From: Girardia tigrina
Taxonomy: Eukaryota
Direction: 5' to 3'
Assembly (NCBI GenBank): GCA_001938485.1
Contig: MQRK01207995.1
Span: 80,793-144,792, forward strand
Length of the DNA: 64,000 nucleotides
The position numbers and the translations under genes were made by a program. A model generated the notes under the pieces. The model saw only the letters and a list, made by a program, of their open reading frames with translations. It did not search any database and was not told the DNA's origin. Of the stretch, positions 1,610-61,000 are shown piece by piece (the first letter of the stretch is position 1; the number at the start of each line of letters is the position of its first letter).

Positions 1610-4600
1610 CTGAATTTATGAAACAAATCAAAGTTTTTCTTTCTTTTGAATTACTTAGAAAAAGTAAAATGAATATCAATTAGATTCAGAAATTTATTAA
1701 GTGTATCAAGATTTTTATTTGGAGATTAACAATAAATGAAATTCATTCATTAAAAAAATATATTTAACTACGTAACCGGATGTTTTATCACCGGACGATT
1801 CATCACATTTTTATTTTTCTAGTGGACGATTCACCACCGGATGTTTCATTACCGGCCGATTAATCACACTTTAAATGAAATTATAATAATTTTTTATTAA
1901 ATAATTCACCATACACTAAATAAAATTTTATAAATTAAAAGTAATCACATTTTTATTTTTGCCGAATGATTTTTTTATTAAACAATTCATCATATTTTAA
2001 ATGAAATTTTACAAATTAAAGCCTTCAGTCATTGCTCTTATGCCGGTTAATAATTTTATATATCCATCAATCATCCATCAATGTTGACTTTTCTTCAGGG
2101 AATAATCAATGAAATGGCTATGCAGACTGGAAGTTTTTATTGGCCGCAGCAGGAAGTCATAGAGGACCAAAGAAACAATATGTAATACTTTAAGAGCAGA
2201 TCAGGAGTGCAGTTGAAAGTTGCATGAGAACAAGTCGTTTGATGTTTTTAAGTTATACTGCTAATAAATATTGTAATTCTTATATTCTTGTAATATAAGT
2301 ATATTTATATATATTTTATCTTAATTCATTAGTCATAATTTTAATTCAGTATTGGTCAATCAGTGATAAGATGTGTCTTAAAAATAGTTTGTTGTGAAAG
2401 TTATCGAATTTAGTACGAATTATCGTTAAAATAATTGTTTTTATTAATTTCAAAATTAAAGCAGGTTTGATGAATCATCCGCGAGAAAAATAAAAAAAGA
2501 GATGATTCATCCGATGGTAAAAAGTCCTAGAATCTTAACTATAATATACTTTGAGGGACCAACCGTCATCTTCAGGTGACGGAATAATAATTTAATTCAT
2601 CTATAAATAAATGTAAAAATAATGCTTATGTAATCGTTTACATGAACTTAGGCTCATAAAAAATTCTCAATCAGTTGGTTGAGACTGCCTATTTAACATT
2701 GATTTTAAGGCAAGGTTACCTAAATAACAAGACTTTATGCGACAATCTCTCCCAATAAGAGCAATTTTGCAGAACATAAGAAAATATGTAAATGTGATAT
2801 TAATAAATTTGAGATTCTGTGTTAGCATTTCGATAGTTATCGGGAGAGGAGATGGTTTAATTTTAACAAGAGCAAAGGTATGTATTACTTTGAAATTTAA
2901 GAAAATGATTATTAAAACTAAGTCTACCTGAAGCTCGTTAAAGAGTTTTTGATACTCGCTAAATGAAGCAACATTGCGCAATTGATCAAATGGTGAAAGA
3001 TCTGTCTTCATCGAATTTATCAGATCAACAGTTGCCTGATACTGACGATCAAACCCCATCTTTTCGGTAATAATTTGAGCAAGTGAATCTATTTGAGACT
3101 AAAATATAACACAATAATTATGTAAATATTAATAATAACAATAATAATAATATAATGTTTGTAATGACATAACTGTTCTCAAAATATAATAATATTACAC
3201 TAAGATGATGTCACGTCTCATCATATCATCTGAGTTCGAATTAAAGTGATTTTATATTTAATGAAATCACCTGAATATGCAATTGTAATATCAGATTGCA
3301 TTGAATGAACTGATCCAAGGATTTATTTTATAATATTGCTTCAATATAAAAGGAATAATTATTTCGTTACGTTCAGTTATTGAACCATGCTTGCGTTTAA
3401 ATAGATTTTATTATGAAATTTCTGTTCTTTACAATTTTAGCAGAATTCGAGAAAGATTCAACAAATCTCTTTCCTAAATCTCGGGAATTCTAGGTCAGTG
3501 ATGATGGTTCACCATCTCAAAGTTTGATTCAAAAACAAAAACAACTGCTCAGACATGGTCAAGTATCTCATCAGCAATCTTCCTTCTGAAATCCTCCAGA
3601 ATTTCGACTCCAACGCTGCGAAATGCCTCAATTCTTTAAGGCAATATAAAGAATTGCAAATATTGATTTTTAATTCTTCTAGCCGATCACAATTCGATTT
3701 ATTTAGCAAATATTTCCAAGCTCAAACATCGGGTAATTTTACAGTCTCATAATTTATTTCAAAAACTATTTCGGAATTAAACTCATTTTAACCTAACAGT
3801 CATTCAAATTCAGAACTCGTGAAGCAATTATTTCTAGTCACTAAGCTAGTTCACATTTGTCCATATTATCCGGCTCCAATGAATCCCAGCTTTTTGATTT
3901 GGCCACAATTGCTGATCGTGTTCTTCAAAAATCAACAAAACAAATGTTCCACCGACCCTCAGGTTGCCACGAGAATCGGACGGAGGCAGCAGGGTTACGC
4001 AGTGAACTCTTTCCGATTTGATTGTGCTGGGCCCATTAATTGAGAGTGCCGTCGAATCCCAGACATGCGGTAATCGAGCTGTCTATTCGGCAGATCAATC
4101 GATCTAGGTTGGTATAAGCCGGCCGTTCGATATCGAGATTCTGGCCGCAGATATCGTAAATCGCTTCATTGTCCACCACAAACGCACAATCGAGTGTTCG
4201 AGAGTCGTATGAGTCATCAAGACCAAATCGTATAATTCAACGACTACAGTAGCGATCTGCGGAGCCGGATAAACGGCGAATTCGAGTTTCGACCTCCTTT
4301 CGCAACCGACACAATTTGAAAAGCCCTTTATAAGTCTGTAATTCATATTTTTCTTCTTTTCAAAAAATCAAAAAAAAACAATTGAAAACACGAAATCAAT
4401 CCACTCAAATTCAAAATCAATAATCCATCAATTTTTCCAGAAAATGTTTTCAGTTAATTTAATTTGTAAAATAAAACAAATTTCAAGATCGAAAAACTTT
4501 CACCTTTTTCAATGAATTTTTTACCTTAAAAATATAAAACAATTTTTTTGAATCGATATAACCGTCATAATAAAATTTCAATGAAAACAATTGTAAAATT

Positions 4601-5369
4601 GACGATGGAAAAATTTCGGTTTCGTTTTTCAATAATTATTCGATTGGATTATGATTCCAATCGACCGATTTCAGATATTGATTTAATAAGTATTTTTTTA
4701 GGAGATTGAATTTTTCTTTTCTCGATGATATAAATAATAATAATAATAATAAATCTAAAATATAATAATTTTAATATTGAATTCTGAACACCAAAGATCC
4801 ACAAATATCCAGACCTATGCTTCACAGTTGAAGAATTCTGCAAATAAGTCAAGTTATTAACGACTTAAAATGTGACTGACAATTTATGTAAACCGGTCAG
4901 ATTCACATTCTCTCATCTGAAAACCCTTCAAAGCGGATGGTGCAGATGTCATTGTCCCGGCTGTATCAGATACCATATAAGCTCTAAGGATGTTGGGACT
5001 GCCTGGTAGATCATGTCAACCTCTGGAAAACTGATCATCTCTAACACAGACGGATGTATCCTATTATGTCATAAATTACTAGAGAAACTGTGAAGATCCG
5101 TTTTGACGTATCCCAATTAAGCAATGATAGTTTCGGTGATATATTGTAAACCAGCATAATCACAAGTTTTAAATCCTTTAGGTTTATAGTTTTTTGTGTG
5201 ACTTTTTCATGTTGGAGTAGGCCTCCTCCCCGCGGCAACCCGCGCTAATGACTCATAGAGCCTGTAAGGAGCCGAGTCGGTAACTTTACTGACACTGTTT
5301 CTATTTTCGTTATTTCCTGTTTGTAAAAGATTTTCAGTGATATCGAATCGCATTATAAATGAATCTCAG

Positions 5370-5417
<48 letters not shown>

Positions 5418-8400
5418 TCTTACAATTATTATACATATGATGCTAATTTAAATCAAATGCAAAGTCATAATATTTACATACATAGGTATTAGTTCATAAT
5501 ATGTACGCATTAATTCATTTAACATATGGTAGAATAATGGTTTGATAATATATGTTAGTTAAAATTACTTTGCAATCTATTTCATGGCCATCTAACTGAT
5601 CTGAAAGGTCCTGTAGAACGAAGTCAATCTGAGGTTCTTGTGACATTTCCATAAGTAAATGCATTTGAGTTGAAAATAGTTCCAAATTTGATTTTTCTTG
5701 TACAATATCATTGAGTAATAGCTATGTGAAAATTAGAATGAACAAATTTTTATTATTAATAATGCAAAAATAATAGCATAAATAACAACAAATTCCAATT
5801 AAAATGAGTTTATCTTCGTGAAGCAGTCATTTACTTTATTCATCGTTTCATATGATAAACTCAGGTGAAGGAATTGCTTGCACGACGAATAAACGAACGA
5901 TGGAAAAAGGCATCAAGTTTGTTACAATTTTCGCATAAACAGAATCAAGTAGAATTAAATAATTAAAATGGTGAATTAAATTTAGACCCATCACTAAAAT
6001 TTAAGACAGAGTTTGCATTTTTGCTTGTTAAGCTATCAAATTGATCAAAAGTAAAGACTCGTACGATTCTGATTCATAATAAAAAGTCATGGAAGAAGAT
6101 AATCCTAGCTTAACTTTACAAGAAAAACTGGAATATGCAATACAAAGAGACAGAAATTCTAATATTACTCCCAAAGTTCGAATATGAAAAAATGTTACAA
6201 ACATTATAAAAAAATTTAATTATTGAAATTGATAGCAGACGGGGATCAAGCCATGAAAGATGTTATAACAACTTATATTCAATACCCTCAGGTAGTAAAA
6301 GTCAGAACGAGTTATTTCTTAATGTGGAAAAATTTCTACAAAAATAAGGTCCTTCTTGAACGATGAAACTTTTGATATGTTATGCTTTTTAAGATCTTAC
6401 TTCAAGTCCGATAAGAAATAATAAATAAGTTATATGTTTGATTTTTGTTTGAAAAATAAATCAAATATTGATGTCCAAAATTTTTCCTATTTTGCATTTC
6501 CGTTAACATTTTCAAGTTTTCTTTGAACCGCAGCAGAAGCGGGTACCCGGTTATGAATAAATTCAACAACAGAAAAACTGGTATAAAACTTACTGTTTTG
6601 CATATCTAACTCAAGTCATGTATAACTCGATTATCAACCTTTATTTATTCTTTAACCCGATAATCAGGCAGATTTACTTTATCATAATTAAATATGTTTG
6701 TAAAAAATAAAAGATTCACCTCTTTATATTTTTATTGAGGAATCTGTTATTTTTTAACTATAAAACGAAATTGAACCAAACAAGTTTACCAAACGGAAAG
6801 TGGTTTGATGAACTTGTCTAATGTTATGTATAGAGAAATGAAAAAATAAACCGACAACCAGAACGGAAACTATTATTTTGAATTCCAACTGATAACCGTA
6901 TAACTCGACAAAAATTACTCCCTAGAATACACAGATTGTTAACGATAAATCAGTCAATGAAGATAGGGATATTTTTCGGCAAAACTGGAATGTTAATGGA
7001 TAGAAAATGATTAATATTCGCCAATATTCGGTTGATGAATTGTAAATAAGTGGACGGCAAATAATGTTATTTCCTTCTGATAATTCCTTAGTTAGCGATA
7101 AGTAATTGTAATTAATATTCATTTGTGCATTGATTTCAATTTTTATCTAAATTCATAATTGAAATTTCTATGCCAAACATAATATAAAATATAATGCCAA
7201 ATATAATTATCTTTTCTTCCTCTCCTTATTCTTCTTTATAAATAAAAAGGATCTTCTTTTTCTTTTCTTAAATAGTTTCTTGGGAACAAAATAAAAATGT
7301 ACATTTTCAGTAAACATAACATACGACACATTCCATAACATATAAAAAATAAAAAATGTGCATTTACAATGTTTTTCCTAAACGTATTCAAAATCGAGTA
7401 CAATGAGTCATGTATCCATTAATAAACAGATATCAGGCAACATATAAACATCTCAATTCTTTGCATGGTACGAGTAATGTTTTCACATAAATCATTCCTT
7501 ATTTACAGGACATGTTATTCAAATGTTGTTGTTGTTTAAAACTGGTCTTAAGTCACGTTGCTTCATGTCTCTTCTAACAAAGGATATTTATAGATACATT
7601 TCAGCCGATTATATTCGTGTTAGACATAAACTGGCTGAACATCGTTTGGCTGGATCTGCCAGTACTTGAAATATTCAAGACTTATACAAATCATAATAAT
7701 AAAATTTTTAAAAGATTTAAGTATAATAATTACAAAATAAATATAAGCAAAATTAAAAATAAAAATATTCCAACCTTCATTTTATCAATTTCCATTTCCA
7801 TATTACTCGAGTAATTATATCTTACAATTTTAAACTTTTCTTTTCGACCAGCAAAACTTTTCAATTTTTTAGAGAAACCTTTAATATTTTTATTGTAAGT
7901 TCTCCATTGTTGCAAAATATCCTTCACAGAAGAATTGTAATTTTCAGCTGTTTTCGTTAAATTGAAATACTCGGCTTCCATTTTATTGATTTGGTTTTGG
8001 ATCTTTTCCTTGGAGTTTGTTTCACTGATATTTTTAATGAGAACATCAGCTTTTTCCACGGCAAGATTCATCATAGATTTACCGTCTTTATTAATAACTG
8101 AATAAATCTGTTTCAGTTTTTCACACCTTTCGTTAATTAAAGACTCTGAACCTCGAACATCGAAGTTTAAATTAATCAATTTATTTTGTTCTTCTAGCCA
8201 GAGTCCAAGATCGGAGACTGATGTTTGATAATTCTGATTAAGGTCTAAAAGAGAGTTGGTCTTCTTTTTCTTTTTAGTTAAGATATCGGATGCAGATTTC
8301 AATTTCTTTTCCACCAAAGTTAACCACTCTTTAATCGTTTCGTTTTGATTGCTTTTATAATCATTTACAGATCTGACGAATATGGTTGATTTCTGATTTA

Positions 8401-11400
8401 GTTCTTGGGTGAAATATTCCATTTCATTTAAAAAGCTTTGCAAGGATGATATCTGAATTTCAGATGTTGGATTTTGCTTTGAAACTTCTTCAATCAATCC
8501 ATCGAGACTTAGGGATAGATTCTCCATCGTATTTCGTATTTGATTTTCTTGAATTCTTTCAGAAGTATAAGACGATTTGAAGTCATTATATGAATCTACA
8601 GCATTGTCGTAGATTTTAATACAATCTAAGTAATCTATTGATAAATCTTTTTTGCCATTGTCACTTGTTTCCACCATCACTTCCTTGAACGACGTATTGA
8701 GGACTAATTTTAAATCTTCATTCTTAATAATTTTATTATCTAATATTTCAAATTCTTCTCTTAAATCATTGAGACTTTGTGAGTTTTCCTTTCTTTCTTT
8801 AATATCTTTTATTTCTTCCTCAAATGCACTGGTCATTTCCTTAAACTTATTAATTTGACTTATGTAAAGTTCATGAGTTCCCAACCATTTTCCAAGAGTT
8901 TCCACCCGTTGCTGTGTTGACGTTACCAAAGCCGAATATCTGATTTGAATGCCTTTAATGTTATGGTTTAAAATAAAATTCAAAGGGAACTTCTTTCCAT
9001 TTTCTATTAAATCATCGAGTTTTAATTTATGATCATAAATACTTAGAAGATGGTTTTGACATTTTTCTAAACTATTCTCCTTTTCTTCAAATGTTGCAAG
9101 CAAACTTTTATTATTAAACAGACCCTCTTTTTCACTTAACCAAGTTTCGAATTCCTTAAAATTCATTTCATACTCTTGTAAATAAGCTTTTTCCTGTTCA
9201 AATTTATTTATTTTGTTTTTTAAAATATCATAAAGGGTTTCGTATTTTGCACAAATTTGTCTTACTGTTTCATCGATACATTTTTGTCCCTCTGACGACA
9301 ATGACTGAATAAAACTATTTTTATAGCCATTTAAGCTAGAAATTTTTGATTTTCCTTCCATTAGTTCCATTTGAAGAGAAAGATGATCTTTAATCTCATC
9401 ATTAAGTTCCTCAACCGAACAATCAAATTTTGATGAAATACTTGAAAGTTTATTTTCAATTGTTTCTAACCATTTCATCAATTCTTCGCTTTTTTTGTCG
9501 AATTCCGTCTGACTATCAAGAGCCAACTTTGCTTCTGAAACTTCAAAGTTAATTTCTTGAATCATCTCTCGATATCTCTTCGACATTTCCGTTCCATCAT
9601 CATCGGATTTCAAATCTCTCATTGTATCTAAGTGTTTATTCATTTCCTCTTTCCAATCTTTAGCTTCACTTTGAAGCTTTTTGTTGTCAAAATATTTCTT
9701 TCTTTTTTGAGCAACATTGTCTGCATTTTCTTTCTTAAACGTGTTTAAAGAATCTTTAATCTTTTCCAACCAGTCGTTTAACATTTTACTTTGATTACTA
9801 AATTCAAGCATTTTGAATTCTTCCTTTTCTTTATCTAATCGGATTTTGGTATATAAATCTTCAAGCTTCTTTACATTCTTCTCTATTAGAGCCATTTTAT
9901 TACTTATTAGTTCCTTTCCTTCGGCGGAAGAGACATTTTGACACTCATTTCCTATACTATTCAGTTTTGTTAAAGAGTTTTTCAAATCCGACAAGCCAAA
10001 ATTTTCGATGTTTGATTTATCAAACTCAACATTCTGAATGTCATTCTTTTTATTTGCGATTTCTTTTAACAAATCTTTATAGCAAATCTCAAACTTCTCT
10101 TCGGAAATTATTGAACGAGTGTGTTGTTCGATCAGTTTGTCTACCTTTTCCCTTTGTGACCGGTTTTGTGACTCTAACTTTTTGATTATATTACTCAAAT
10201 TTTCACTGATAAATGAAATCGAAGTTTTATTTATCAATTTCTCTGCCACCTCATCAATTTCTGTTTCCAAATCAACAACTTCCTTCTTCAATTCCAGGGT
10301 CTTATTCAAAATTACTTTTTTATTCTCAATCGTTATTCCATAACCTTCCAAATTGGAAATTTCTTCATCAAATTCAAAGTTTCTTTTGCTAATTCTATGA
10401 ATCCTATCTTCAAGTGTGTTCCAATTTTGAAGATCTTTATTCAGTCTAACTTTAATTGACTTTAATTCCATTTCCAGTTGATCTCTTTCTTTTTGAAGGT
10501 TTTGTAGTTCTTCGACTTCCACAGCACAACCGATACGATCAACCGTTAAACCTTCTTCAATATTTCGTTTAACTGATGAAATTAAATTCAAATTTTTATC
10601 AATTTCTTTAATTTTATCTTCAAGATTTATTTTATTAATTGGAAATTCAATAAGAAAAGTTTGCTTCACTAAGTCAATACAGTGCATAGTTTCCCGGATA
10701 CTATGGATCAAAGATTCCAGTTGTTCTTGATTAATTATTGTCTTATTGACGTCTTTTATTAATTTATCAACATTATTTAAAGATTTTTCCACTAAATTCA
10801 GTTGTTGATACTTATCCTTTTCAACAAAATCCCTCAACCTTTTATGAGCAATCGATTTGACATTGATTTCATTCAACCGATCTTTTATCGAAGTCAACGC
10901 ACCATTCCAGCAACTCAAACTGTTCACCAAATTGAACTTCAACACCTTCTGATCAGATATTTCACGCAATTCTCCAATATTCAGCGAATCGAATTCATTC
11001 CGCATATCCGTCAACTTCCTATTCGTCTCTTGGACGGTTGTATGGATGTTATTAAACTGACCTTTAAATTCATTGGCATCATTTAAATATCTCTCAAAAT
11101 TTTGTTTCATTTTATTAAATTGAGTTTTATTTATTGATTGTTTTTCGTGAGAAAATTGACCGAATCTTTGATAGAGCGATTTGAGAGACTCAAGTAAGAC
11201 CTCAGTGTCCTGATGACGAGAAATGGTTCCATCGAGTTCGGATCTGATCATTGAACATGCTACAAGACTGTCGCACTCGGTGAAGTCATTGATAAGGGAA
11301 TTCAGTCGAGCTTCCATTTGCTTCAATACAAAATCGAGATTCTTTTCATCATTATCAAATTGATTCTGTAGCACCGTAAGTTGATCGCAGTCAGAACTGT

Positions 11401-13393: not shown

Positions 13394-13424
<31 letters not shown>

Positions 13425-19949: not shown

Positions 19950-19988
<39 letters not shown>

Positions 19989-22804: not shown

Positions 22805-22840
<36 letters not shown>

Positions 22841-43046: not shown

Positions 43047-43091
<45 letters not shown>

Positions 43092-49000: not shown

Positions 49001-52000
49001 TTTGACTTCCTCTTTCAGTTGTCCTAACTCATTCAAAAGACTTCCATTAATTTTCGATTGTAGTTCGGTTTGAATATTTTCAATTGCTGATACTTTGTCT
49101 GACACAAAATCTTCAAAATCTTTTGCCATTTCAGTCGAGTTGTTTAAAATTTCATTTTTGACTTTTAAATCTTGAATTTTTTTCTCAACATTCTCTTTAC
49201 ACTCATCAATAATGGTCTTCAAGGTATCTTTTTTGTTCTTAAATTCTGCTTCTTTTGTGGCACTAAACTTTGTATGAGACCTTTCTACAGCACTGCTAAG
49301 AGCTGTAAATTTTTCTTCAATGTTATCATCAATCCGAGAAAGAATGTTTTCTAGTTTTGATATAGAATCTTCAAATTTGATGTCGTCTAGCTTTTCATTA
49401 TTTAAAATGCTCAATTCCTTGTTGATATCATTTAGTTCAGTTAGGAGAGTTTCAGAATAGTTTTCTATTGCAAGTAAAACTTCTTTTGTTTCTTGCAACT
49501 TTTCTAATTTATTCTTCATAATTTGATTGATCATATTCCACGTATTTTCGAGATCAACGGACATTGGAGTGATGATACTTTGTGTTTCAGACTGATTTTG
49601 TAAATTCTTTCCTTCTTCGATTTCCATCAAAATATTCGGAGCTTCATTTTCCAAACAAGATAAAAGTTTTTGTTCTTCTTGATAAATGTCTTCTATTTCT
49701 AAAATTTCTTCTTCGTTTATTTGATCCAGCTGCATCTTTAATTCCAAAAGTTTTTTGTTTCGCTTTGCTAAACCTTCATTGATTTCCATTGACTTTGCAA
49801 CCATCGGCGCTGAAGGAAAATAAATCTTACAAAAACTAACAAAACAAAATGAGATTTCATAATTTATGTAGAGATATTATTAAAATTATACATAAAAATA
49901 ATGTGAAACTATAGATTAAAATATAATTTTTGCCGAATGTATAAGTGATTAGAAATTCCTTTTTCTTATAATAATTGAAAAATTAAGATGAATTATTAGT
50001 AGCAGACATTAAAACTTTTATTATACCACAAAAAATGTTTAAATCTAATATTTAAACAAATTTTTTTTGAGAAACTATTTGTTTTATAAATCTTAAACCG
50101 ATATAGATAAAAATACATATAAATATTCATATTTGATTTTTTTATTACTTCTATAATCACTTTTAAATCGTTTCACATAAAAATTATACACTTTTTTTTT
50201 ACTTTTTATATAATATTAAAACTATCAAAAAAATTTTATTAGCAATTTAATTGATCTTCTTAATTTTAGTAATTTTATTTTTTCGAATGTTACATATTTA
50301 ATTATATAAAAATTTTAATTTGTACATATTTAATATAACCTTCTTTCAAAAATTTTCCTAACATTTTTAATTTCTAACAATTATTATTATCATATTTTAC
50401 GGGGCAATGTAGCCCCAGTTTAAGCCTAAGGACCAATAAGATAATGCACAGTCAGACAAGCGTTTACGTCTAAAAAACAATGAGTAATTTCATCTTTACC
50501 GATCGCTGTCAAATAGTTCCTTTAGCTCATTCCGTATTAGTAAAATCTGCCTCCCTATGGATACTATGTGAAGTCAGTGTTAACTTGTTTCTCCCCCAGA
50601 ATGTGCTAATATTTGACAGTGATTCGTGATTATTTTAATGGCGTTTTCATATTTCTAAGGTTGTGAGAGAATCGGTATTTCGGACTTTAAATAAAAAATC
50701 CTAGACGTCAAATTTCAGAATGTTCTCAGAAATTAAGTATAAGCATATATTTATTATGAAATGTTTTCCAAAAATTAAGAAAACATTAGAATTTGTTAAT
50801 TTCTGAAAAATAAGGACAAATTTAAAACAGGGATTTTGAAAAGCTTTTAGAAAGATTTTAAAAATATTGATAATGAAAATAATTAGATAAATAGTACAAC
50901 ACATTTCGAAACATTACTTTCAATTTCACAAGGGCCTTTTTATATTTATCAATCAGAAAGTGTAATACTACAAATGGCAAAGGTAAACAAGGAAAAGATT
51001 TAAAAACTTGACAATTAGATGTTCTTGGAACTTCCTCTGAATTATTATTATGAGTTACTTCAGACATCCAAATTTTATTAGAATACAAAAAAATGTTTAA
51101 ATCTAATATTTAAACAAACTTATTCTTTTGAGAACAATTTGTTTTATAAAACAAAAATACTTATAATATTAATATTTTATTTTATTTTAATTTTATAAAT
51201 CAATTTTAAATTATGATAACATTTTAAAATATTTAATCGTTTGGTTTCATTTTATTAATTTTTAAAATCATTACACATTTAAAAATTATTCATTTTAATT
51301 TGTATATTACATTTTCGGCTATTTCAAAAATTCTTAATATTTAACAGCTTAATTAGATCTCATTAATTTTAAAATTTTCTTTTTAAACTTTACATATTTA
51401 AATATATCTAAATTTTAATTTGGACATATTTAGTGTAAGCTTATTTCAAAAATTTTCCAAACATTTTTTTTAAATTCCTAACATTGACCACTAAATTTTT
51501 CCTTAGCCATTCAAATTCTCCAACGTTATTCAAAAAAAGTAACATTTTTTCTCTTCATAACTGTGAGGAATGTTTTGAATTGTGTGTTGATATTGTGCAT
51601 GTTGTATGTTGATTAGGATTGTGCCTCTCCTACACAGATGGATGATTGGTATCTTCTTTGATTCTTACTAATTAAAAATAATTTAATTTAATTTTAAAGT
51701 AAAAAGATTTTAAATAATTTTTGAATGTATTATTTATTTTTTTAATCTAATTTAAAATTTTAATATACTAATTTAATATGTTCTTTTTTTAAAAATGTTT
51801 AGATTTAATTTCGACCAATTAGATTCTTTATAATTAATAATTTTTATTAACAGATTTTCATTTATAATAATTAGTTTGAACTCAGAAAAATATTGATCAA
51901 GAGAGATGTCAAATAGTGAATGCGCTTGTGATAATAATAAATGTTGCAAAACTCATATTGATGTTGTTAATAATAACCAGACGTTTTGAAATGGGATCAG

Positions 52001-55000
52001 CAAGTAAGTGCAAAGTCGAAATTTTCTTCCAGTCCAAACGCACCAAATTTTATGAAAATATTTGTAAGATAGGAAAACTTTGTACTCAAATTTTCAATAT
52101 ATTCACAAAATAGTATTTTTTTAATCCAAATAAATGTGAGAAACAAAACAGAAGTTATATGCGACCTAACTCATACATGAAAATGGATCACTTCCATCGT
52201 TCCATATTGTATATCTCTTATAATCGTATTTAATAATCAAAATTTTTGTACCTTTTTTCGAAACCATATCAATTTTTGGAGCCACTTTTTCATATTTTGA
52301 TAATGAATTCTGAATTTGATTTTTTTCTCTTCCTAATTGTAACGAAGGCGTTGCGTAAATTAAATCAGATAACATTTTGTTAAGAGTTTTTTGTTCAGTC
52401 ATGTATTTATCCCTGAGACTATAAAGTCTTTCGAATTCTTCCAATGTTTTGCCATATTCTTCTGCATTCAGACTTTGAAAATCAATGTTGTCAGAACCAC
52501 ATTCCTCATTTGCACCTTCTTCGGGCACTTTTAGTTGTGACGACAAATGTTCTATTGATGTTACCCAATCCGTGACCTTTGCTAATCTAAATAAAATATC
52601 GAGTGTTATCTAGAATGTTATTAAATAATTATTAAAACTGAAAATATCAATTTTAAAATTGTCAATGGTTTGATAAATTGATATGTAAGGATGATATTTT
52701 TATCAGCGTAGACCAGTGCGAAAGAAATTGCATCAACTTTGAATATTGAACAAATATTTATATTATAACGTACTTTTAAAAGAAAAAACACTACTTCACT
52801 ACGAATCTGTTAGACATGAACCCCAACAGATACCTGAAAATGATTTTAAGATGAGTTAATGTTTATGAAATGTAGATCTCGCTTTATAAGTTTTTAAAAT
52901 CACTTCCAAGAGTTGGAGGCATATTTCGAGAATATGTCGTAAAATGATTTCGTAAGAGCTGGAAACACACTGCATGGTTTCGGACTTGGTTGTAACAAAT
53001 GTTGATTCATAAAATTTGAAAGGCAATGACCAATTTGATGAACTTAAGTTATAGCAGGAATTTTATTCCTAATGAAGTGAAAAGCACTTTTGAATGTCTA
53101 TAATTTATTGCACATCTGACAAATTCTTTTAAAAATGTTGCAATGTCTTACTAGATTCCTTTTTAAAAAACTAGTCACCGTAGGGACTGCATCTTTAAGA
53201 TTTTAAAAACTGAAACTGATTAATACTGACCTCAGATCAAAAAGGCATCGACAAAGATTGTGTGGACTAGCTATTTTGTTCATAGAAGAAATCATTAATC
53301 CCCGTTAGACCACAAGGACATAATTGAAGACTTCGAAAACACAAAGACAACGATAGTAATTTTTCAGCTGTGGTTTCCTCATGAAGTTTGAAGTATAGTA
53401 AAGTCCATTATTACCACGAATTCTCAAAGAACTTAAAAAAATTTGAAGTATAAATCCTTGCTACTAACCTTAATAATTTTGCTACTTCGACATCGAAAAT
53501 TTTACAGACATGTTATGCAGACCGAAAAAAGTCTAAAATAATAATATATCTAATGTCAATATGCTATCATCCCAGATACGCTTCATTATGACTTTAGTTA
53601 TTATAAGGAGTTAGTTACATCTTTGAAATTCGCCAGATAATTTAATTATATAATAGAATTATGATTTCTGTCTGTCATTCTGTTTGTGTGAAGTTCCCGG
53701 AGTTCAGTAAAACAAATTTAATTATTTTTATTAAATAATTTCCGTAGTGCCCGACACATTTAAGTCATTATTTCGGATCTGCCCTGAAGTATATGAATTT
53801 TGATATGGATTTGGGGAGAAATCGGTCACAATCCCGGATTCGATTCCATACTGCCCCGATATAGGAATATTCTGAGGCTGATTTGAGATATTCTTTCCAT
53901 AATGCCCCAACATAGAAATATCATCATTTCGGATCTGCTCCGGCATACATCGATTTCTATAGAGATTTGGGGGGGCGGAATTTCCTGCCGTTGTTTAGAC
54001 GAATCACTTTAATCATCGGGAACTTCACACAGACTAATGACAAGTACTCGCGTATATTGTGTTCATTTGAAATGTTTTGTGTTATTGAATGCATTATACG
54101 TGACATGTAATTCGTTACGACAAGATGTGATTTGATAAATTATATTTGAAATTTTTTGTTATTTTGTTTATCAAGTCAATTTTTTTAAGTTTTGTTGCAT
54201 CAATTATGTTGTACCAGCCCCGTACCGTGCCACCTTTTGTGGGTCCCAGACTCTTTCTAAGGGGGCTAGTAATTCTCGTGTAATAAATGAATACTTTTTG
54301 AAAACACACAGTCTGAATGTTTAAATGTCGAATGATCAAGGAAAACAAAATAAATCTTTTATCTAGACATTATTTTGCGTCATTATTGCATATATGAAAT
54401 GATTTTTGCACATTTTTCAGAAATAAAGACAAAAATCAATTACAGTAGCTGCATATTTTATTTTGTTTGCACGATGGACAATTGAACATAGAGAGTACAG
54501 ACAATCAGACAGATTTTCTATAATTTAGGATGAGTGTAGTACTATACAATAGAAATAATACAGCAATTACATACGAAAGTAAGAAATTGTATGCATGAGA
54601 TATTAATGTGACTCAAAATAACTGTAGTCGACGATTTTTCATTTCATTAAACCGTCGAAGAAAGTCATCAGATTTGATGTTATTAGTGATGCCACTTTCA
54701 AACGAGAGCAATACAAGGTTTGCTTTACTAGAATAGGTCATAGATGAACGAAAGGGAGTTAGAACACGAGATAAAGTACTAAAAATCGCCTCACATGAGT
54801 GAGTGCCGAAGCTGCAAGACGATACACAGATGGAAATGCCTCTCGGTAAGAGTACAGTTCTTTCACTAACTGATGAACGTTTGTCACAGTAGTTGTCCTC
54901 TTCAAAAGAAATGTCTTTGCAGTTTCAAACTCATGATGGGTTTTGCTTACCTTCACTTCACACAAATTCGCTAATGTCTTTAGTTCTTCAATATTTAAAA

Positions 55001-58000
55001 ACTTAACCATGCAAGAGACTTTTAAAAGTTTTTGTTACTGACACTGAAGCACTTTGTTAATTCCAGGAGAGTCATCTCAACGACTTCGTAATACATTTCG
55101 CAATATGCACATCTGATAGACAAGTCCTGGTGTTCTGTCTGTCCCACAGATCCCAATACAACGAAATTCTCCAATTGTGAATTCATCTTAGTTCGTCTTC
55201 TTTTCAGTTTCGGTTCCATATCAATATGACCTTTAAATTTCTCAAAAAGAACTTGGAATTCCTCTTCATTACGGAGGCTGCTAATGCGCTCTATGACGGC
55301 ATCCATACCATCACATGTAGGTGACATAGATTGATGACATAGTAGCAGGGATAGTATCACTAGATGAAGTGACTGAAGTCACAGAATTCTTCGGAATGAC
55401 TTCGAAGAAATTCATGATGCTCTTGTGTGTCGAAATATTGTATTATAATAACATTAATGTCACAAGGTAGGATCAATTACAATGACACTATGCACTGTAT
55501 AGTTTGCTGTAAGATTAAGGTCAGAATAAGGACAGATATAGACAGCAAATGTGTGCTTCTGTATGCGTGTTTATTTGGATGTGGATGATTCCCTCATACC
55601 ACGTCAATCCATGTGTGCACACTTTCCTTCTCTCTCACCCACGCTACCTACATTACTCTCTGTCACCCTATAGGTCTGTTTTTCAGTTGTTCTCTATACA
55701 TTTTGCCTGTTGTGTGTATAGGTATGTATGTATGTGTGTTAAGGGGTAGAAAATATTTTTTCATATATTTTCTATTCTCAAGTGGACATTTCATTATCAA
55801 ATGGACATTTGAGTAAGTATGTTTGTTAAATTAACATTTTGATTGGTTAAATTGTATATTTCTTTCAATTTTAGATATGGATTTACTATCAAATAGACTT
55901 CTTATATAATTAAATGGACCTCACTGTACTACTACACTATGTATATGATATATGAATAAATATGACTCCCTATTTCTTTTTCATTTGTCCTTTTTACTCT
56001 GGGGGGTAGACTTGCGTTTGGGGGGCCGGGCCCTCTTGCCCCCCCCCCGACGGTACGGGCCTGTGTTGTACTGATTACAATATCCAGAAAAAGCATGATG
56101 AATAAGGATATTGTGCAAGGTCTAACGAATTTAGTTAACAAAAAAAATCGCCAGACCTGGCGAAACGGGTTCACCATAGTGTATTTAGTAGTTCAAATCT
56201 AAAATATTAAATATTTGACAAAAACCGCAAATTACTTAAGATTTAATATTATTTACAAATTAATTACAATGTATATCAAAAATTAAAAAATATTTATTAT
56301 TTAATGTTACGACAATTAAAAGATTTGAATAAATTACAATTTCAAAAAGTTGTAGAATAGGATAAATTAAAAATATATAATTAAAATTAGGATAAAATTT
56401 AGGATAATAATTTAAACGAAATTAATTGAGGAGTTTACGAAAAAAATTAATTAACACAAGTTTTTGAAAATGTATTTTGTTATATTAATGATTTTTTAGT
56501 GTTAAATAGGAATTTGTATTCTGAAATGTCACATAACGACAATAGCATAAACGACTAGCAGTTATAAAACCATCAAATTCTTTTGTACTCTGGAGATGTT
56601 TAATATTAATTACACGATGTTTTCACGTTGACCTCTCTGAAATTAATCCCATATCAATATAAGAAATTAGAAATTATATATTTGAGAACATTACTTATTT
56701 CATATTCTTCTAAGTATAACTTAAGACGTCATCAGTTGGAGTATTATTGCAGATTTTGCTTCTTTAGGCTTTTCTTGAGACTAATTAATTTAAGAGTGAC
56801 TGTTCGATTCACATTCGGGGGGCCCATATGGAAGTTAACCCGACAAATAATATTTGGAAAAAATCGTTTAAATGATGGGGCTGATTTAACTCCGAAAGCA
56901 ATTGAGACGAAAACACAGAAATTAAAGCCGAAACCAATCAACCAAAAATCAATTCAATCAATAGCGGTTCGTCGTAAAATTNNNNNNNNNNNNNNNNNNN
57001 NNNNNNNNNNNNNNNNNNNNNNNNNNNNNNNNNNNNNNNNNNNNNNNNNNNNNNNNNNNNNNNNNNNNNNNNNNNNNNNNNNNNNNNNNNNNNNNNNNNN
57101 AGAAACCAATCGGAAATGAATATATCAAAAGAAAACGAAAATTTGTGAAAAGAAATTGGAATTTGTTGATATACGAAAAAAGACGAAGAATTTTATCCAA
57201 TAAATTTTTTGGGGAATATGTTTGGAGATATAGAAGAGAGGGAAACTTTTGTACTTTCCTGTTCTGAGAGTTCAATCGATAACATCCTACTGGGAATGTG
57301 ATTTTTTTACTGTTTTATAGATGTTTATGACTTCAAAAAAAATTGATTTTGTAATTTTGATTTTCCGAGGGGTATTCGGTTGTTTTTTGTTGTCGAGGTG
57401 TTGTTAAAATTGATTGGTGAAAGTTTCGATTTTGTTTGAATCGAATAAATAAATAAATTTTTATAGCGCGAAATTTGTTTTGTTTGGTGAATGAATGAAT
57501 GAAATTGACAATTAAATCGATTCACTACGATTCCGAACGAAAATCGATGGCCGATGAATATTATCCGTTGTCACAAAGTGTTGTCGGGAATTTATTGGAT
57601 AAATTGTACGAAAAACGTAAATCGGTCGCGATCGATATCGAAAAAGTCGTCAAGCAATTGCGGAGCCAAGGCAAGAACGAGGAGATCGAATTGATCATTA
57701 AACATTGCGGAGAGACATTTTTCAATTCGAGCAATTGTCACTACCACAAGGGCGACACGATTGGGTTGACCGCTGTCGCCATCGCTCTCGGCAAACAAGC
57801 GGACGAGTACTGCAGTCTTATTATTTGTCCGTCCATCAAACTTCTCCACGATTCCGATGGCCGAGTTCGGTATTACGCATATGAAAGTCTCTACAATTGC
57901 ATTAAGGTTTTAAACGGTAATGTTATGCCGCATTTAAGCCCCCCGCGTCCCGCAACCCGCCCACCATCGCCAACGCGCCGCAGCCACCAAGCTGCGCTCG

Positions 58001-61000
58001 CTCTCGCATCTCCAGTGACCCTCAAAGCCTGTATTCAGAATGAGGAAGGATTGTGTCATGTGAATTTCTTTTATGAAGTTGTTTTATACTAATGAAAGAA
58101 GAAAATATTCATATTTAATCACTTTAAAATGGAAGAAAAGTGATGATACTAAAATACTAAATAATGAAACATTCTATTTACCTTTCCTGAAAATCCTTTA
58201 ACTTTATTGGAATTTCAGTTATTGCTTTTTTAGTATTATCAGCTTTCTGAAAGATCGACTGAACTTTTTGCTTTAATTGGTCAAATAATTCGGCGAAGTC
58301 GCTGCCGGAAGCACTTCCTATTTCCATATTCAACAATCTTATCGCTTCAAGCAATTCCAAGCAATCATTTCGCATTTTATTGTCAGCAAAATACGCCTTA
58401 AAATAAATTTTGAATTAAAACAATTGTAACATTAATTTTTTATTTTTTCTTTTTTTTATTTAAAATTAAAAATCGTTTTTATAGAGTTAATTACAAATTT
58501 TAAATTAAATAATAATTTTAATTATTTTTATGTATTTTTAAAGAAATTTGATAATAAAAAATTGGCTAGGTTTCCGTTAGAGCGAATTAATAATCTCGTT
58601 ATATTTTCTGTCTACATTCTTCTTCCGTTATAATTATTCTTTATATACTGAGTTGTGCTGATCAATTAGGAGTTCTGTGTTATTGTTTATAGTTATGTAT
58701 CAACTGCAAAGCCTTTTTCAGACTTCTTCAAATGTCTTTAACATTCAAATAGAAATAAAAGTTAATTCATTAATTACAGAAGAATAAGAATAATTTTGTT
58801 TATAAATTAGGTTGGTTAAAAAATCACCACTTTTTCGTATTTAAAATTGAGCTTTAAAATAAAATGTTATGGGATAATAATTGATTTTTTGAAAGACGTC
58901 TTTTATTTACAAGTTTGTTTTTGTATTGCTTAAGAATTTTTTATTTTTTGGTTAATAAAAGGTAATGTCAAGTCGCTCATATGAGCATTTTCAACACCAT
59001 ATTTTTATGTTTGATTTGAGAACTACAACCGCAGAAACTATCTGATTTATGCCATATACAGAAAAGAGATTATGCTTACAAAAAAGTAGGAAAGGTCCAT
59101 ATTAAGAACATTAATTGAATTTCCTTTACATTTATTATTATCACAATTTGAATTGTCACTACAACAATTCTCCGTAAAACTTGCGTAGCTCGTCATCGTT
59201 CTTGATTGATAATCTTTANNNNNNNNNNNNNNNNNNNNNNNNNNNNNNNNNNNNNNNNNNNNNNNNNNNNNNNNNNNNNNNNNNNNNNNNNNNNNNNNNN
59301 NNNNNNNNNNNNNNNNNNNNNNNNNNNNNNNNNNNNNNNNNNNNNNNNNNNNNNNNNNNNNNNNNNNNNNNNNNNNNNNNNNNNNNNNTAGTTTAATTTT
59401 AAAGTGATTATTTAACTTTTAATAATTGATTAAACAACTCAACGTTTTAAAATATTTAAGATATCAATCTTCCATCTGGGTGGGAGAAACACAATCCTAA
59501 AACAACACAGAATAAACACCATTCAAAAATATTCCTCACAGTCCATACGTTTGGCGCATGGATTTCTCATGTTTTGAATAACAAAAATAAAATAATTCAA
59601 AAATTCATGGTAACCTTCGGTATCATCTTTCAAAACATTAGCACATGTAAACATTTATTTACCTAAGATTTATCGTTAACGAAACTGGTGCTCGATAGTC
59701 AATATGGAGCAGTACAAGAAATTAGCTAGTCCAATAAACTGCGACACTGCTAGAAAAACAAGGGGTCACCTGCATAAAATAATGTTTTGTAAAATATGGG
59801 ACTGGAAGGCATTGTCCACTTCAATTTCCTCTAAAGGAGTAAAATGGCTTGCAAGATTTAAAGGTTTGAATTATAATAAAATATTTTAATTCCCAAATTT
59901 TAATGATTATTAGTCTGATTAAATATCTATATCTAATATCTATATTTACAATTATCGATAAAAAATGAATTATTAAAATATCCTCAATAAAAAAATGTTT
60001 TTTAAATAATCAGAAATAGTGTGAAAATTTTAAAATTTTAATTAAATAAATTATTTTCACGTCGTTTTATCTTTCTATTTATTTAAATGTCAGAAGAGTC
60101 AAGAGATATTTACACAATCAATGTCGTTCCTAACATGCCAATATGGAATTTCATGTCCAACAAATGTGTTTTCGTTAGGTAGTGATACAGAATTAATTAC
60201 TTGGTTAATTAAATTCTTCAAGTTGAGACGAGGCAAATTTTTACTACGGAGATTTTGACAAACTTTTTGAAGGTTTGAAAGAAGTAGTAAACAATAACGG
60301 AGAGTATATTTAATGATTAGTTTATTGTTTTGTATTTTGTGAAAATAAATCTTTTTAAATCAACCATGACAGCCTTAAATTATCAATCAAGTTATGAAGG
60401 TAGAATATATAACACAAACAGATAAAAATGGTGCTTGAAGATCTTTCAGATTTTAAGTTAACAATGTATTACAATAAAAGAGTAGTGTCCTGATAGACAT
60501 TCTTATAAATAAAAATATAAATAAACTTGTATTGGATTTTTTGTTTTTACTGAACGCTAATGAGCGGCTTGGAACCATAACTACTTGGGGAGCAAGTGGT
60601 TGGTTCCAAGTGGCTCAAATAAGGAAACAAGTAAACAACAGAAATAATAAATATACATAAATAACATTAAATATAAAATTAGAAAATCAAAATATCGACT
60701 TTTAATTTTAAAAAAATATTATTAACATCGATTAATAAAAAACTATAACATATTTAACCTCCTCAGGCCCAGTGCACATTGTAATGTATATAAATTTCAG
60801 TCCTTCTTTCAAAGCCATTTTCGACTTGTTTACATTGGGAACATTTTATACATCGTAGTGTATACAATATTTATTCGTTTATTCTTGCCAGTGTCCCCAT
60901 TTAGGGATTAACATTTGTGTTATGTGTCATTCTTGCAAATTTTGAAAAATATTTAAAATAAAGTTAGGTCTGAGGAGGTTAACAACAAAAATAATTAATC

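Follow-up and report, generated by a model that had tools for sequence, protein, structure and literature searches.

The coding fragments and GC-rich tails dispersed through the window (the whole stretch of DNA analysed, 64,000 nucleotides) form families of composite repeats, in which the 5′ head of a gene is joined to a non-coding tail and the two are copied together; two or more of these kinds are mobile units present in multiple copies. The units are copied whole, share modules between different heads, keep a fixed 3′ end, and decay neutrally. We judge it about an even chance that each fragment is a dead copy of a composite, non-autonomous retroposon, formed by a template jump of a non-LTR reverse transcriptase and subsequently amplified.

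Table 1. Composite units, associated features, and host gene in the window, with the evidence that defines each.
Feature	Position	Strand	Evidence
Module A, tubulin-type copy, non-coding tail (start ..AATGGGCCCAGCA, end ..GGAACA)	3945-4038	-	Similarity, covariance model
Alpha-tubulin internal piece, dead copy	4039-4340	-	PDB phmmer and six-frame read
Host gene, giant spectrin-repeat/coiled-coil	7730-49813	-	P0002 collinear map, Pfam
Host gene, large exons (first set)	7730-11851, 17954-18673, 21523-22302, 25663-26283	-	P0002 map
Host gene, large exons (second set)	29226-30461, 36967-37314, 39682-39987, 45815-49813	-	P0002 map
DDX28-like N-terminal piece, broken by one or more stops or frameshifts	27762-28144	+	PDB, ORF pieces
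DDX28 tail, GC-rich tract (GC 0.52)	28145-28262	+	Composition
Unit with ORF head	30679-30951	-	Similarity to L006 and L007
Module B, shorter here than in other copies	30679-30765	-	3′ ~85 nt of the 30679-30951 unit
Young 128-bp duplicate, differing from 30599-30726 at one position	31383-31507		Repeat comparison
ZFPL1-like near-N-terminal piece, no GC-rich tail	31840-32190	-	Six-frame read by eye
HECTD1-type leader, AT-rich	45184-45297	+	Similarity to L005/L009 starts here; flanks upstream unrelated
HECTD1-like (armadillo-repeat) N-terminal head, from its ATG	45298-45557	+	Similarity to P0005
Module A, HECTD1-type copy, true 3′ end at 45645	45558-45645	+	Shared end, then unrelated flanks
Probable VAC14 leader, CpG-bearing	57365-57546	+	CpG content against AT-rich surroundings
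VAC14 N-terminal head, residues 1-130, frame intact	57547-57936	+	Pfam, P0001
VAC14 tail, very C-rich tract	57937-58040	+	Composition

Composite units and their shared modules

Three public metagenome assemblies yielded three more copies of leader, HECTD1-like head, and module A, all on short contigs (L005, L009, and L010). Window positions 45184-45645 are 92-98% identical to them through leader, head, and module, with 96-98% identity among the four copies in the head part. Junction and 3′ end are common to all four loci, and the flanks are unrelated (about 50% mismatch). Because the whole unit recurs at this identity in three separate assemblies between flanks that cannot be aligned, both an orthologous intron and a mis-join in the window assembly are excluded as sources of the similarity. 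One contig copy (L010) is 5′-truncated, with ~60 nt missing from the start of the leader, whose 5′ boundary is placed with a precision of about 20 nt. These copies bear out the original prediction that gene-start pieces move joined to a terminal module, and do so more firmly than the window by itself could. The head is 80% identical to P0005 (E = 3e-12) and carries one frameshift in the window, its frame being open in the contig copies. A Pfam search returned no match and a PDB search an armadillo-repeat-like match only; the HECTD1 assignment holds by eye, as HECTD1-like, and was not recovered by these tools. Variable sites among the four copies fall 5/5/5 over codon positions, and this evenness points to neutral decay. 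No TSD was found at the window copy, nor at L005 and L010, the contig copies that have flanking sequence on both sides.

Module A, ~90 nt long, also follows the alpha-tubulin piece: the two tails are 82% identical over 94 nt and share both 5′ and 3′ boundaries, and the tubulin-type copy scores 84 bits with covariance model R1. The tubulin assignment was confirmed by PDB phmmer (E = 7e-18, residues 203-249), though on the minus strand, where piece and module are fused in sense orientation. By eye, the piece extends upstream to about residue 143-163; it is thus internal (about residues 143/163 to 249) and contains one frameshift. A candidate decayed 14-nt TSD flanks this unit (3927-3940/4363-4376; p = 0.02 against null placements). 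All five module A copies (four HECTD1-type and the tubulin-type) end in ..GGAAYA and then pass into unrelated flanks, whose first bases are G, A, G, C, and T. The two copies within 64 kb each follow a coding piece directly at its 3′ side, in the same sense and starting at the same module base, and the module reading frame is identical after both heads. Two unrelated heads sharing the module is inconsistent with its being native to the parental loci.

The module contains a terminal hairpin of 16 bp, capped by a GCAA loop and lying 3-4 nt from the module's 3′ end. Relative to shuffled sequence, the least-decayed copy folds with z = -3.1 and the window copies with z = -1.5 and -0.3; a very stable fold for the window HECTD1-type copy was rejected, as flank bases had been borrowed. 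The hairpin is specific to the sense strand (z = -3.1 vs. +0.2 on the other strand), as expected for an RNA signal. The alignment contains 0 compensatory pairs, and hence no covariation in favor of the structure, four of the five copies being nearly identical, and an Rfam search of the modules matched no family.

A second family is represented by the 30679-30951 unit, previously proposed as a possible RUS1 piece. Its ORF head has no Pfam or PDB match, leaving the RUS1 name unsupported, and its intact relatives (P0006 and P0007) are ORFs without an assigned family. The unit is 85-91% identical to contigs L006 and L007, and its GC-rich module B is 95% identical to that of L008/L011, where the module comes after a CUX1_N head (Pfam E = 3e-27); the CUX1-module B junction is present in two assemblies. 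One terminal module accompanies different heads in the case of module A (tubulin and HECTD1-like) and of module B (the family-less ORF and CUX1_N). A further terminus, ..GGTGACACTGGTCACWTC, is common to three contigs (L007, L008, and L011), whose sequences beyond it are unrelated. Modules B and C occur in mosaic order, with segments present or absent from copy to copy; each is an open reading frame and may itself come from a gene.

The VAC14 head matches Pfam Vac14_Fab1_bd (1e-17) and is 78% identical to the real VAC14 N-terminus (P0001) over residues 1-130 only, the real protein continuing beyond; the predicted VAC14 fragment is thus secure. Its probable leader holds 12 CpG in 182 nt; with a single copy to go by, the 5′ boundary given is provisional. 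The tail (GC 0.66; 49 C in 104 nt) was rejected as continued VAC14 coding in every frame, folds with z = -1.1 against shuffled sequence, and had no match in an Rfam search; no TSD was found at the unit. For the DDX28-like piece, the best PDB matches are DDX28 (E = 0.002), with similarity stopping at the Walker-A motif, so that the predicted identity gains weak support for what is a broken piece. Its tail folds with z = +0.7 and likewise had no match in an Rfam search. The two tails are unlike module A, each other, and everything else compared, contigs included. The original grouping of four fragments under one class of structured module consequently holds for the homologous tubulin and HECTD1 tails and fails for the unrelated DDX28 and VAC14 tails, whose fold z is about 0. 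By extrapolation, these two may also be retroposon tails; each is single-copy in all sequence searched.

Head and tail share the same sense in every unit, and leader plus ATG are present in the VAC14, HECTD1-like, CUX1, and DDX28-like heads. Two further pieces have no such tail. The 128-bp duplicate is flanked by a perfect 16-bp TSD (31367-31382/31508-31523), a length reached in 0/300 null placements, longer than the TSDs of cut-and-paste DNA transposons and within the 10-20 bp LINE range (PMC2104539); it indicates that short poly(A)-less patches do get inserted in this genome. The ZFPL1-like piece, as predicted, can be read by eye, on the minus strand; no search tool supports it, and it is heavily decayed, with several stops and at least one frameshift. 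Its candidate 11-nt TSD (31770/32232) has p = 0.06. The four candidate TSDs other than the perfect one are marginal (p = 0.02-0.12, with a null drawn from less AT-rich sequence); the predicted lack of TSDs accordingly stands at the HECTD1-type and VAC14 units, with marginal candidates elsewhere.

Genomic setting

The host gene (Pfam Spectrin 2.7e-8) is collinear with P0002 at 30-45% identity, P0002 being the only long one of just three relatives among 1.84 billion representatives. On the minus strand, this collinear match continues through two gaps, 22841-22890 and 40315-40998, supporting the placement of the fragments in introns of one gene across both. P0002 starts at the 45.8-49.8 kb exon, where the coverage ends, and the map does not extend across the gap at 56982-57100. 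More exon-like ORFs occur on both sides of the mapped exons. Given such long host-gene exons, 130 intron-free codons in a head prove little. None of the five N runs in the window touches a fragment, tail, or head-tail junction; the nearest to any unit (56982-57100) precedes the VAC14 leader by 200 nt or more.

Composition is as originally described, with GC of 0.34-0.47 in heads, 0.52-0.66 in tails, and 0.14-0.32 in flanks; CpG observed/expected is about 1 across the window. Searches around the units found no poly(A), TIRs, or Helitron end—only short, AT-rich, chance inverted matches—in agreement with the prediction. The window contains relics of mariner and hAT, and no reverse transcriptase or LINE was found in the window or contigs.

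Proposed origin and alternative explanations

The fixed 3′ end and 5′ truncation of the units form the classic non-LTR pattern (PMC2104539), and there are precedents in LINE template-jump chimeras (PMC2104539) and in internally primed, poly(A)-less retropseudogenes (PMC5322556). The head would comprise the 5′ leader and first 85-130 codons of a cellular mRNA, and the tail a short non-coding RNA sequence. DNA synthesis would begin on the tail RNA, by a poly(A)-independent non-LTR (LINE-type) reverse transcriptase, which for module A probably recognises the hairpin near the 3′ end. On reaching the 5′ end of the tail, the enzyme would jump into the interior of an mRNA and continue to the 5′ end of that mRNA; such a jump would explain why heads derive from gene starts, stop mid-CDS, and meet the tail at a fixed boundary. 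Some chimeras would then become source elements recopied whole, accounting for small families whose members share a 3′ end, differ in 5′ truncation, and lie between unrelated flanks; whole-unit recopying is observed for the HECTD1-type and CUX1-type units. Tail-less pieces (ZFPL1, the short unit at 30679-30951, and the 128-bp duplicate) could arise where this enzyme primed internally on an RNA. The partner enzyme is hypothetical, as neither window nor contigs contain a reverse transcriptase or LINE.

A second RNA route, exon trapping by splicing, is possible and clearly less probable. A module-bearing retroposon in an early intron would offer an acceptor at the 5′ edge of its module, the spliceosome would join the first exon or exons to it, and the product would be retroposed, SVA with a MAST2 exon being the precedent for such 5′ transduction. 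The fixed 5′ edge and single frame of module A after two heads, the N-terminal bias, the common sense orientation, and the intronic position of the units would all follow. However, the tubulin head is internal and not a gene start, the DDX28 head stops inside Walker-A and the VAC14 head at residue 130 with no sign of exon ends, and the mosaic B/C modules fit serial jumps at least equally well.

Capture at the DNA level appears more doubtful still, whether by a DNA transposon (Pack-TIR/MULE-like, Helitron-like, rolling-circle) with the modules as its terminus or as break-repair filler. Most units lack a convincing TSD, like Helitrons and repair insertions; the near-3′ hairpin of module A loosely resembles a Helitron terminus, and the mariner and hAT relics attest to DNA transposons in the window. 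Pack-type capture is reported in animals (PMC8277862). Yet no unit is enclosed by TIRs, there is no TC...CTRR end or A/T insertion context among the 3′ flanks, the hairpin is stable on just one of the strands, the 3′ end alone is fixed and one copy is 5′-truncated, and filler insertion cannot put an identical junction at four or more loci. The original suggestion of an element that inserts near gene starts and co-mobilises upstream DNA finds no flanking genomic DNA, TIRs, or Helitron end in its favor, and its alternative, reintegrated extrachromosomal gene-start DNA, leaves the repeated copying of one identical junction unexplained. The RNA route is favored over DNA flank capture by the fixed 3′ end, the 5′-truncated copy, the same sense, and the ATG-containing leaders.

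It is very improbable that there is no system, merely unrelated pseudogene scraps beside chance GC-rich tracts, or chimeras of short-read assembly. The N runs, the unique and unstructured DDX28 and VAC14 tails, the tail-less ZFPL1 piece, and several identities made by eye would allow it, but the recurrence of the HECTD1-module A junction in three independent assemblies and of CUX1-module B in two, the same-base sense placement of both window module A copies directly 3′ of coding pieces, and the distance of N runs from any junction do not; for module A and module B units it is already refuted. That the units are young functional chimeric genes, with a borrowed N-terminus and a module-encoded C-terminus, is scarcely credible: head-plus-tail ORFs are open in the least-decayed copies (P0005, 124 aa; P0008, 177 aa; window 57499-58092, 197 aa), but GC-rich tracts are open by default in an AT-rich genome, substitutions are even over codon positions, window copies have frameshifts and stops, and the tail-encoded parts match no protein family.

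Comparison with known systems

Ordinary processed pseudogenes are likewise dead housekeeping copies decaying neutrally in introns, but they are 3′-biased, polyadenylated, and single-copy, whereas the present units are 5′-biased, poly(A)-less, tailed, and multi-copy. SINEs with LINE-derived 3′ tails are non-autonomous, combining a head with the tail of a partner reverse transcriptase; like SVA, they amplify as units, become 5′-truncated, and carry one tail across different heads, all features of the composites described here. SINE heads, however, are genes that Pol III transcribes from internal promoters (tRNA, 7SL, 5S), in contrast to Pol II mRNA starts with coding sequence, and SVA has a poly(A) end and relies on L1, whereas these units have no poly(A) and no known partner LINE.

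Pack-MULE/Pack-TIR elements and gene-capturing Helitrons (PMC8277862 for animals) similarly mobilise host gene fragments, often from several genes and in introns, but with TIRs and fixed-length TSDs or TC...hairpin-CTRR ends, where here only the 3′ end is conserved. Tailless retropseudogenes made by L1 keep the 5′ part, are cut short at 3′, lack an A-tail, and are primed inside the RNA, fitting the ZFPL1 piece, the short 30679-30951 unit, and the TSD-flanked duplicate; they differ in that perfect TSDs and A-rich priming sites were the basis of their selection, derive mostly from small structured RNAs, and are single events, not families bearing added tails (PMC5322556).

The bipartite and tripartite chimeric retrogenes made by LINEs, such as MINE (WEIRD-MGL) in Magnaporthe and U6-L1 in mammals, also fuse two or three RNA parts in one orientation with a retroposon end as the 3′ part (PMC2104539). 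They are explained by template switching, the tripartite mosaics recalling head plus module B plus module C here, and the Magnaporthe chimera is a multi-copy family with hot spots as switch points (PMC2104539). Their 5′ part is a full-length cellular RNA, here a 3′-truncated mRNA retaining the gene start only; their 3′ part is a recognisable 5′-truncated LINE, here a ~90-nt sequence with no known LINE parent; and their TSDs are 10-20 bp, the LINE range (PMC2104539), here mostly not visible. A 3′-truncated mRNA as the 5′ part requires an internal landing site, unlike in the published chimeras. Identical junctions here also mark one chimera amplified, not one formed repeatedly. It seems an evenly balanced proposition that the composite units are a variant, itself new, of these LINE-made chimeras; if so, they show the birth of new short retroposons from gene-start pieces and tails.

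Host gene and intronic background

Nearly the whole window is covered by one giant minus-strand gene whose product is a spectrin-repeat/coiled-coil protein; the sequence is animal-like and non-human, AT-rich (GC about 28%), and CpG is not depleted (observed/expected 1.07). Searches with this host gene were run separately for each exon. For a 1,199-residue exon, the search of 1.84 billion representative proteins returned three relatives only, of which the closest is 30% identical, and the lineage is therefore poorly sampled. Exact look-ups of the window ORFs in public assemblies returned no record. Relative to the host gene, the tubulin, 'RUS1', and ZFPL1 pieces lie in sense, and the DDX28, HECTD1, and VAC14 pieces in antisense. 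Mobile-element remains in the window comprise mariner and hAT relics only; no LINE or reverse transcriptase, or remnant of the latter, was detected there, nor was either detected in the related metagenome contigs. Pfam was also run on 20 intronic ORF pieces of higher GC content, to look for reverse transcriptase or other captured genes, and yielded a single weak hAT dimerization match.

Several further features of the window were recorded (see table). A 270-bp CpG-rich island (observed/expected 1.9) is made up of short (C)CACGC(A/G)/TACGC motifs, roughly twelve in all, with neither an ORF nor a domain match, and could represent DNA-transposon subterminal repeats or a cluster of binding sites. 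A GC-richer island consists of two similar neighboring segments with a peptide-like motif repeated in one frame and has no domain match. A dispersed repeat of ~100 bp, its copies 74-77% identical, is not related to the modules described below. Residues 1436-1551 and 1553-1658 of P0002, the only long relative of the host protein, are consecutive and both align to a single host exon; either P0002 is tandemly repeated there, or the window lacks or conceals a copy of the exon.

Coordinates of the features discussed in the text (window positions)
Feature	Position	Strand	Remarks
Module A beside tubulin piece	3945-4038	-	same frame after both heads, 3945-4040
HECTD1-type unit	45184-45645		
Module A after HECTD1-like piece	45558-45645	+	same frame after both heads, 45545-45650
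DDX28 tail	28145-28262		9-mer at 28250-28258
VAC14 tail	57937-58040		9-mer at 58015-58024
'RUS1' piece	30679-30951	-	
Source of 128-bp copy	30599-30726		
128-bp copy	31367-31523		including target-site duplications
Matches to L007:1-101	27563-27622; 39256-39332		85%; 74%
Mariner transposase relics	16957-17373; 24186-24635	+	Pfam Transposase_1, 5e-18 and 4e-15; intronic
hAT-like relic	54616-55378	-	weak Dimer_Tnp_hAT; intronic
CpG-rich island	43738-44007		
GC-richer island	53700-54100	+	
Dispersed repeat	59451-59541; 35651-35754; 51560-51655		
Host exon matched twice by P0002	36967-37314	-	
Collinear P0002 match	49813 -> 21523	-	
Assembly gaps within P0002 match	40315-40998; 22841-22890		
Assembly gap beyond P0002 coverage	56982-57100		at least 200 nt upstream of VAC14 leader

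Gene pieces and their tails

The base composition of the pieces and tails is as the original prediction described. A unit joins a head (a piece of a cellular gene, usually its start) in sense to a short non-coding tail; the identities assigned to the heads fared unevenly. The VAC14 piece is secure (Pfam 1e-17) and is 78% identical to residues 1-130 of a genuine VAC14 N-terminus (P0001), with its frame intact. The alpha-tubulin assignment also stands (PDB E=7e-18, residues 203-249), with the correction that the piece lies on the minus rather than the plus strand; it represents an internal part of the gene and carries one frameshift. The DDX28 piece is weakly supported, its best PDB matches being DDX28 entries at E=0.002. 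The VAC14 and DDX28 heads end in mid-CDS, at residue 130 (whereas the real protein goes on) and at the Walker-A motif, respectively, so these 5' parts do not correspond to full-length cellular RNAs. Read by eye, a minus-strand piece interrupted by several stops and one or more frameshifts presumably derives from ZFPL1. Another by-eye reading gives what we take to be a HECTD1-like piece, for which the tools return an armadillo-repeat flavor only. No support was found for the proposed RUS1 identity, and the name is kept here as a label. Neither a spliced leader nor any other 5' motif is common to the unit leaders.

The tubulin and HECTD1-like heads share a tail, module A. The two window copies are 82% identical, share both their first base (..AATGGGCCCAGCA) and their last (..GGAACA), and are read in the same frame after their different heads. 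The putative DDX28 and VAC14 units are each represented by one example, with tails that resemble neither module A nor each other. The possibility that these tails are diverged copies of module A was rejected: local alignments remain at shuffle level, and a covariance model (R1) built as a profile of five aligned natural module A copies finds the five known copies only. Likewise, tblastn of P0001 on both strands ruled out frame-shifted, inverted, or downstream VAC14 as the source of the VAC14 tail.

The tails lack a coding signal in every frame, and no known RNA family accounts for them. Rfam returned no family at the gathering threshold on the whole window or under permissive settings on each tail and all contigs, and the tRNA scan found no tRNAs. 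No Rfam ribozyme family was matched even at E<=10 on 240-nt slices, a weak negative as Rfam captures HDV-like folds poorly. Origins from snoRNA, snRNA, rRNA, hammerhead, or HDV-like sequences found no support. Module scans of JGI metagenomes gave no matches and then four chance matches in GC-rich, prokaryote-like contigs; scans of viral contigs and prokaryote genomes gave none.

The modules had been described as structured, which holds for module A only; the DDX28 and VAC14 tails fold no more stably than shuffles, and neither do modules B and C, tail segments of a second family. In module A, a 16-bp hairpin capped by a GCAA loop stops 3-4 nt short of the 3' end, and the least-decayed copy has a fold z of -3.1 in sense versus about +0.2 in antisense. 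Trimmed to their true ends, the window copies reach z=-1.5 and -0.3; the striking fold of the window HECTD1 module copy reflects the inclusion of eight flank bases absent from other copies. Among the five copies, four of them nearly identical, no covariation support for the hairpin was detected.

At the point where GC content drops, the DDX28 and VAC14 tails each carry a 9-mer (GGTCACCTC and GTGACCCTC, respectively) like that at the module C terminus (GGTCACATC; L008:632-640). The comparison was made post hoc; at most, it could faintly hint at a common 3' recognition motif.

Unit families outside the window

Copies outside the window came to light when the HECTD1-like and 'RUS1' pieces were used as protein queries: the matches were ORFs on short, low-coverage contigs from three ENA metagenome assemblies, and none of the contigs resembled human sequence. 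The complete HECTD1-type unit (AT-rich leader, HECTD1-like head, and module A) is present in contigs L005, L009, and L010, and these copies and that of the window are 92-98% identical to one another. L010 is a 5'-truncated copy from which the first ~60 nt of the leader are absent. The head frame is open in the contig copies and carries one frameshift in the window copy, and every module A copy ends ..GGAAYA. In each contig the similarity ends within the contig on either side, with flanks mismatched at about 50%, that is, random. Variable sites in the head fall 5/5/5 across the three codon positions; the unit evolves neutrally. Under neutral evolution an orthologous intron would show flanks as similar as the unit itself, and the four copies therefore occupy different loci. 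A GC-rich stretch precedes the truncated copy (L010:1-33), unlike the AT-rich flanks of other copies, and may itself have been captured, as a third part of the unit, instead of being ordinary flank.

A second family is defined by the 'RUS1' piece, which is 85-91% identical to contigs L006 and L007; the intact ORFs of these contigs (P0006, P0007) match no known family in Pfam, PDB, or PHROGs. Its GC-rich 3' ~85 nt, module B, recur at 95% identity in L008 and L011, where they follow a different head, the CUX1 N-terminal domain (Pfam E=3e-27). Module B is ~65 nt longer in all four contigs than in the window, indicating that the window copy has been cut short. A further terminal segment, module C, is common to L007, L008, and L011 and ends in a small hairpin (..GGTGACACTGGTCACWTC), beyond which similarity between the flanks is lost; up to that end, L008 and L011 show 96% identity across 640 nt. 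The 5' flank of L007 (L007:1-101) matches two window sites, one of them just upstream of the DDX28 unit. The dispersal of this repeat in both genomes suggests that the metagenome organism and that of the window are closely related.

The recurrence of units and modules in these contigs indicates that the general pattern is real: gene-start heads joined to non-coding tails, tails common to several heads, and copying of whole units, followed by neutral decay.

Insertion signatures

The module ends read ..GGAACA and ..CACWTC, and the 3' flanks start with G, A, G, C, and T; a piggyBac-style TTAA target was rejected. Against a null drawn from the window as a whole, where AT content is lower than in the flanks, the candidate target-site duplications (TSDs) comprise 14 nt with one mismatch for the tubulin unit (p=0.02), 11 nt for ZFPL1 (p=0.06), and two others at p about 0.1 (up to 0.12), and given this null the support for TSDs of old units is weak to marginal. 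None was found for the HECTD1 unit, the VAC14 unit, L005, or L010.

A younger event is clearer. A 128-bp segment, composed of the cut-short module B end and 80 nt of AT-rich flank, has been copied with one mismatch to a site 780 bp away in the same orientation. The copy is flanked by perfect 16-bp direct repeats, a length reached by 0/300 null placements, and lacks an A-tail. This insertion is unambiguous and shows that short poly(A)-less patches do insert in this genome. Its long TSD is of the kind that LINE machinery makes (10-20 bp; PMC2104539).

Origin of the units

The original prediction proposed a gene-fragment capture system, by an element that inserts near gene starts and carries along the upstream flank or by reintegration of extrachromosomal gene-start DNA; its observations were borne out in part, and its interpretation finds partial support. 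We give roughly even credence to a reading in which each unit is a composite non-autonomous retroposon. A non-LTR reverse transcriptase with no need of poly(A) would begin on the tail RNA, reach its 5' end, jump into an mRNA, and continue to the 5' end of that mRNA. Such a jump would explain why heads tend to be gene starts and break off within the CDS, why the tail boundary is fixed, and why head and tail point the same way. Some chimeras may then have become sources of further copies, which would account for a constant 3' terminus, for 5'-truncated copies, and for flanks that bear no relation to one another. The RNA route, the template jump, and a role of the hairpin are inferred. With so few relatives of the host protein, the lineage is very poorly sampled, and the partner element, too, may be a new one.

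The main rival shares the RNA route and differs in how the junction is made: upstream exons would be spliced to the module, in the manner of composite elements that trap exons. We regard this as unlikely. Capture at the DNA level fits worse and is less probable again. The units show no terminal inverted repeats (only short AT-rich chance inverted repeats, none common to units), and every unit lacks the Helitron end (5' TC, 3' hairpin then CTRR) and the A/T insertion context; the units are 5'-biased and no poly(A) tail follows them, in agreement with the absence of poly(A), enclosing inverted repeats, and Helitron ends reported initially.

Coincidence or assembly artifact also fits worse, and we consider it very improbable. 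The window contains five N runs, and no fragment, tail, or head-tail junction is in contact with any of them. P0002 maps collinearly to the window across two of the gaps, so order and orientation are consistent there; a third gap lies beyond its coverage. Functional chimeric genes are the least credible reading: the head-plus-tail ORFs of the least-decayed copies are open and annotated as genes in public assemblies (P0005, P0008, P0011), and their substitution patterns nonetheless look neutral.

If the retroposon reading is correct, the birth of short retroposon families has been caught in progress in this genome: a tail attracting reverse transcriptase and the first few hundred bases of an mRNA would be copied as a unit, and the acquisition of new heads by SINE-like elements could be modeled in concrete, countable terms. 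It would account for gene fragments that are 5'-biased and lack poly(A), a class that standard pseudogene and transposon annotators overlook or wrongly record as gene models. It would also point to a source from which in-frame modules of gene starts can spread into introns, in either orientation, where they might possibly affect splicing and exon shuffling.

More doubtful is the extension that the units form a previously undescribed class, "Pol II SINEs", in which a LINE reverse transcriptase would be recruited by a short tail RNA ending in a hairpin. The 5' end copied from a housekeeping mRNA would include the downstream portion of the core promoter, so that the chimera could be transcribed from its own first base and amplify; gene starts would be captured not by accident but as what enables a tail to found a family. 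Genome-wide, many heads and few tails would be expected, with full-length copies starting at the parental transcription start.

Comparison with known systems

Pack-MULE and Pack-TIR elements carry TIRs and fixed-length TSDs, whereas TIRs are absent here; L1-type processed pseudogenes are 3'-complete and polyadenylated, whereas these units are 5'-biased and have no A-tail. SINE-like retroposons form families of dispersed copies with unrelated flanks, a common 3' end, and variable 5' truncation, a pattern seen in the four HECTD1-type copies (including truncated L010) and in L007 and L008/L011 with another common 3' terminus. However, SINE heads contain internal Pol III promoters (A/B boxes; tRNA, 7SL, or 5S origin), and the heads here are protein-coding gene starts; no internal Pol III promoter head was detected in the units (no tRNA, no Rfam small RNA).

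Among published systems, two come closest: chimeras made by LINE template jumps, among them the MINE family, which is multi-copy and switches templates at hot spots (PMC2104539), and the "tailless" retropseudogenes that arise by internal priming (PMC5322556). The 128-bp copy has a TSD and no A-tail and would resemble the latter if it derives from RNA; the ZFPL1 piece has a marginal TSD only. As in the LINE chimeras, parts of different transcripts directly abut in the same orientation, in fusions of tubulin or HECTD1-like heads to module A and of the family-less ORF or CUX1 to module B (and C). In those chimeras, however, the 5' part is a full-length cellular RNA, the 3' part is a LINE end, and 10-20 bp direct repeats flank the insertion; here the 5' part is a 3'-truncated mRNA or, for tubulin, an internal piece, no LINE is known as parent of the tail, TSDs can mostly not be seen, and a single identical junction has been amplified. 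The head-plus-tail architecture is real and recurrent, and it differs in its details from the known LINE-made chimeras.
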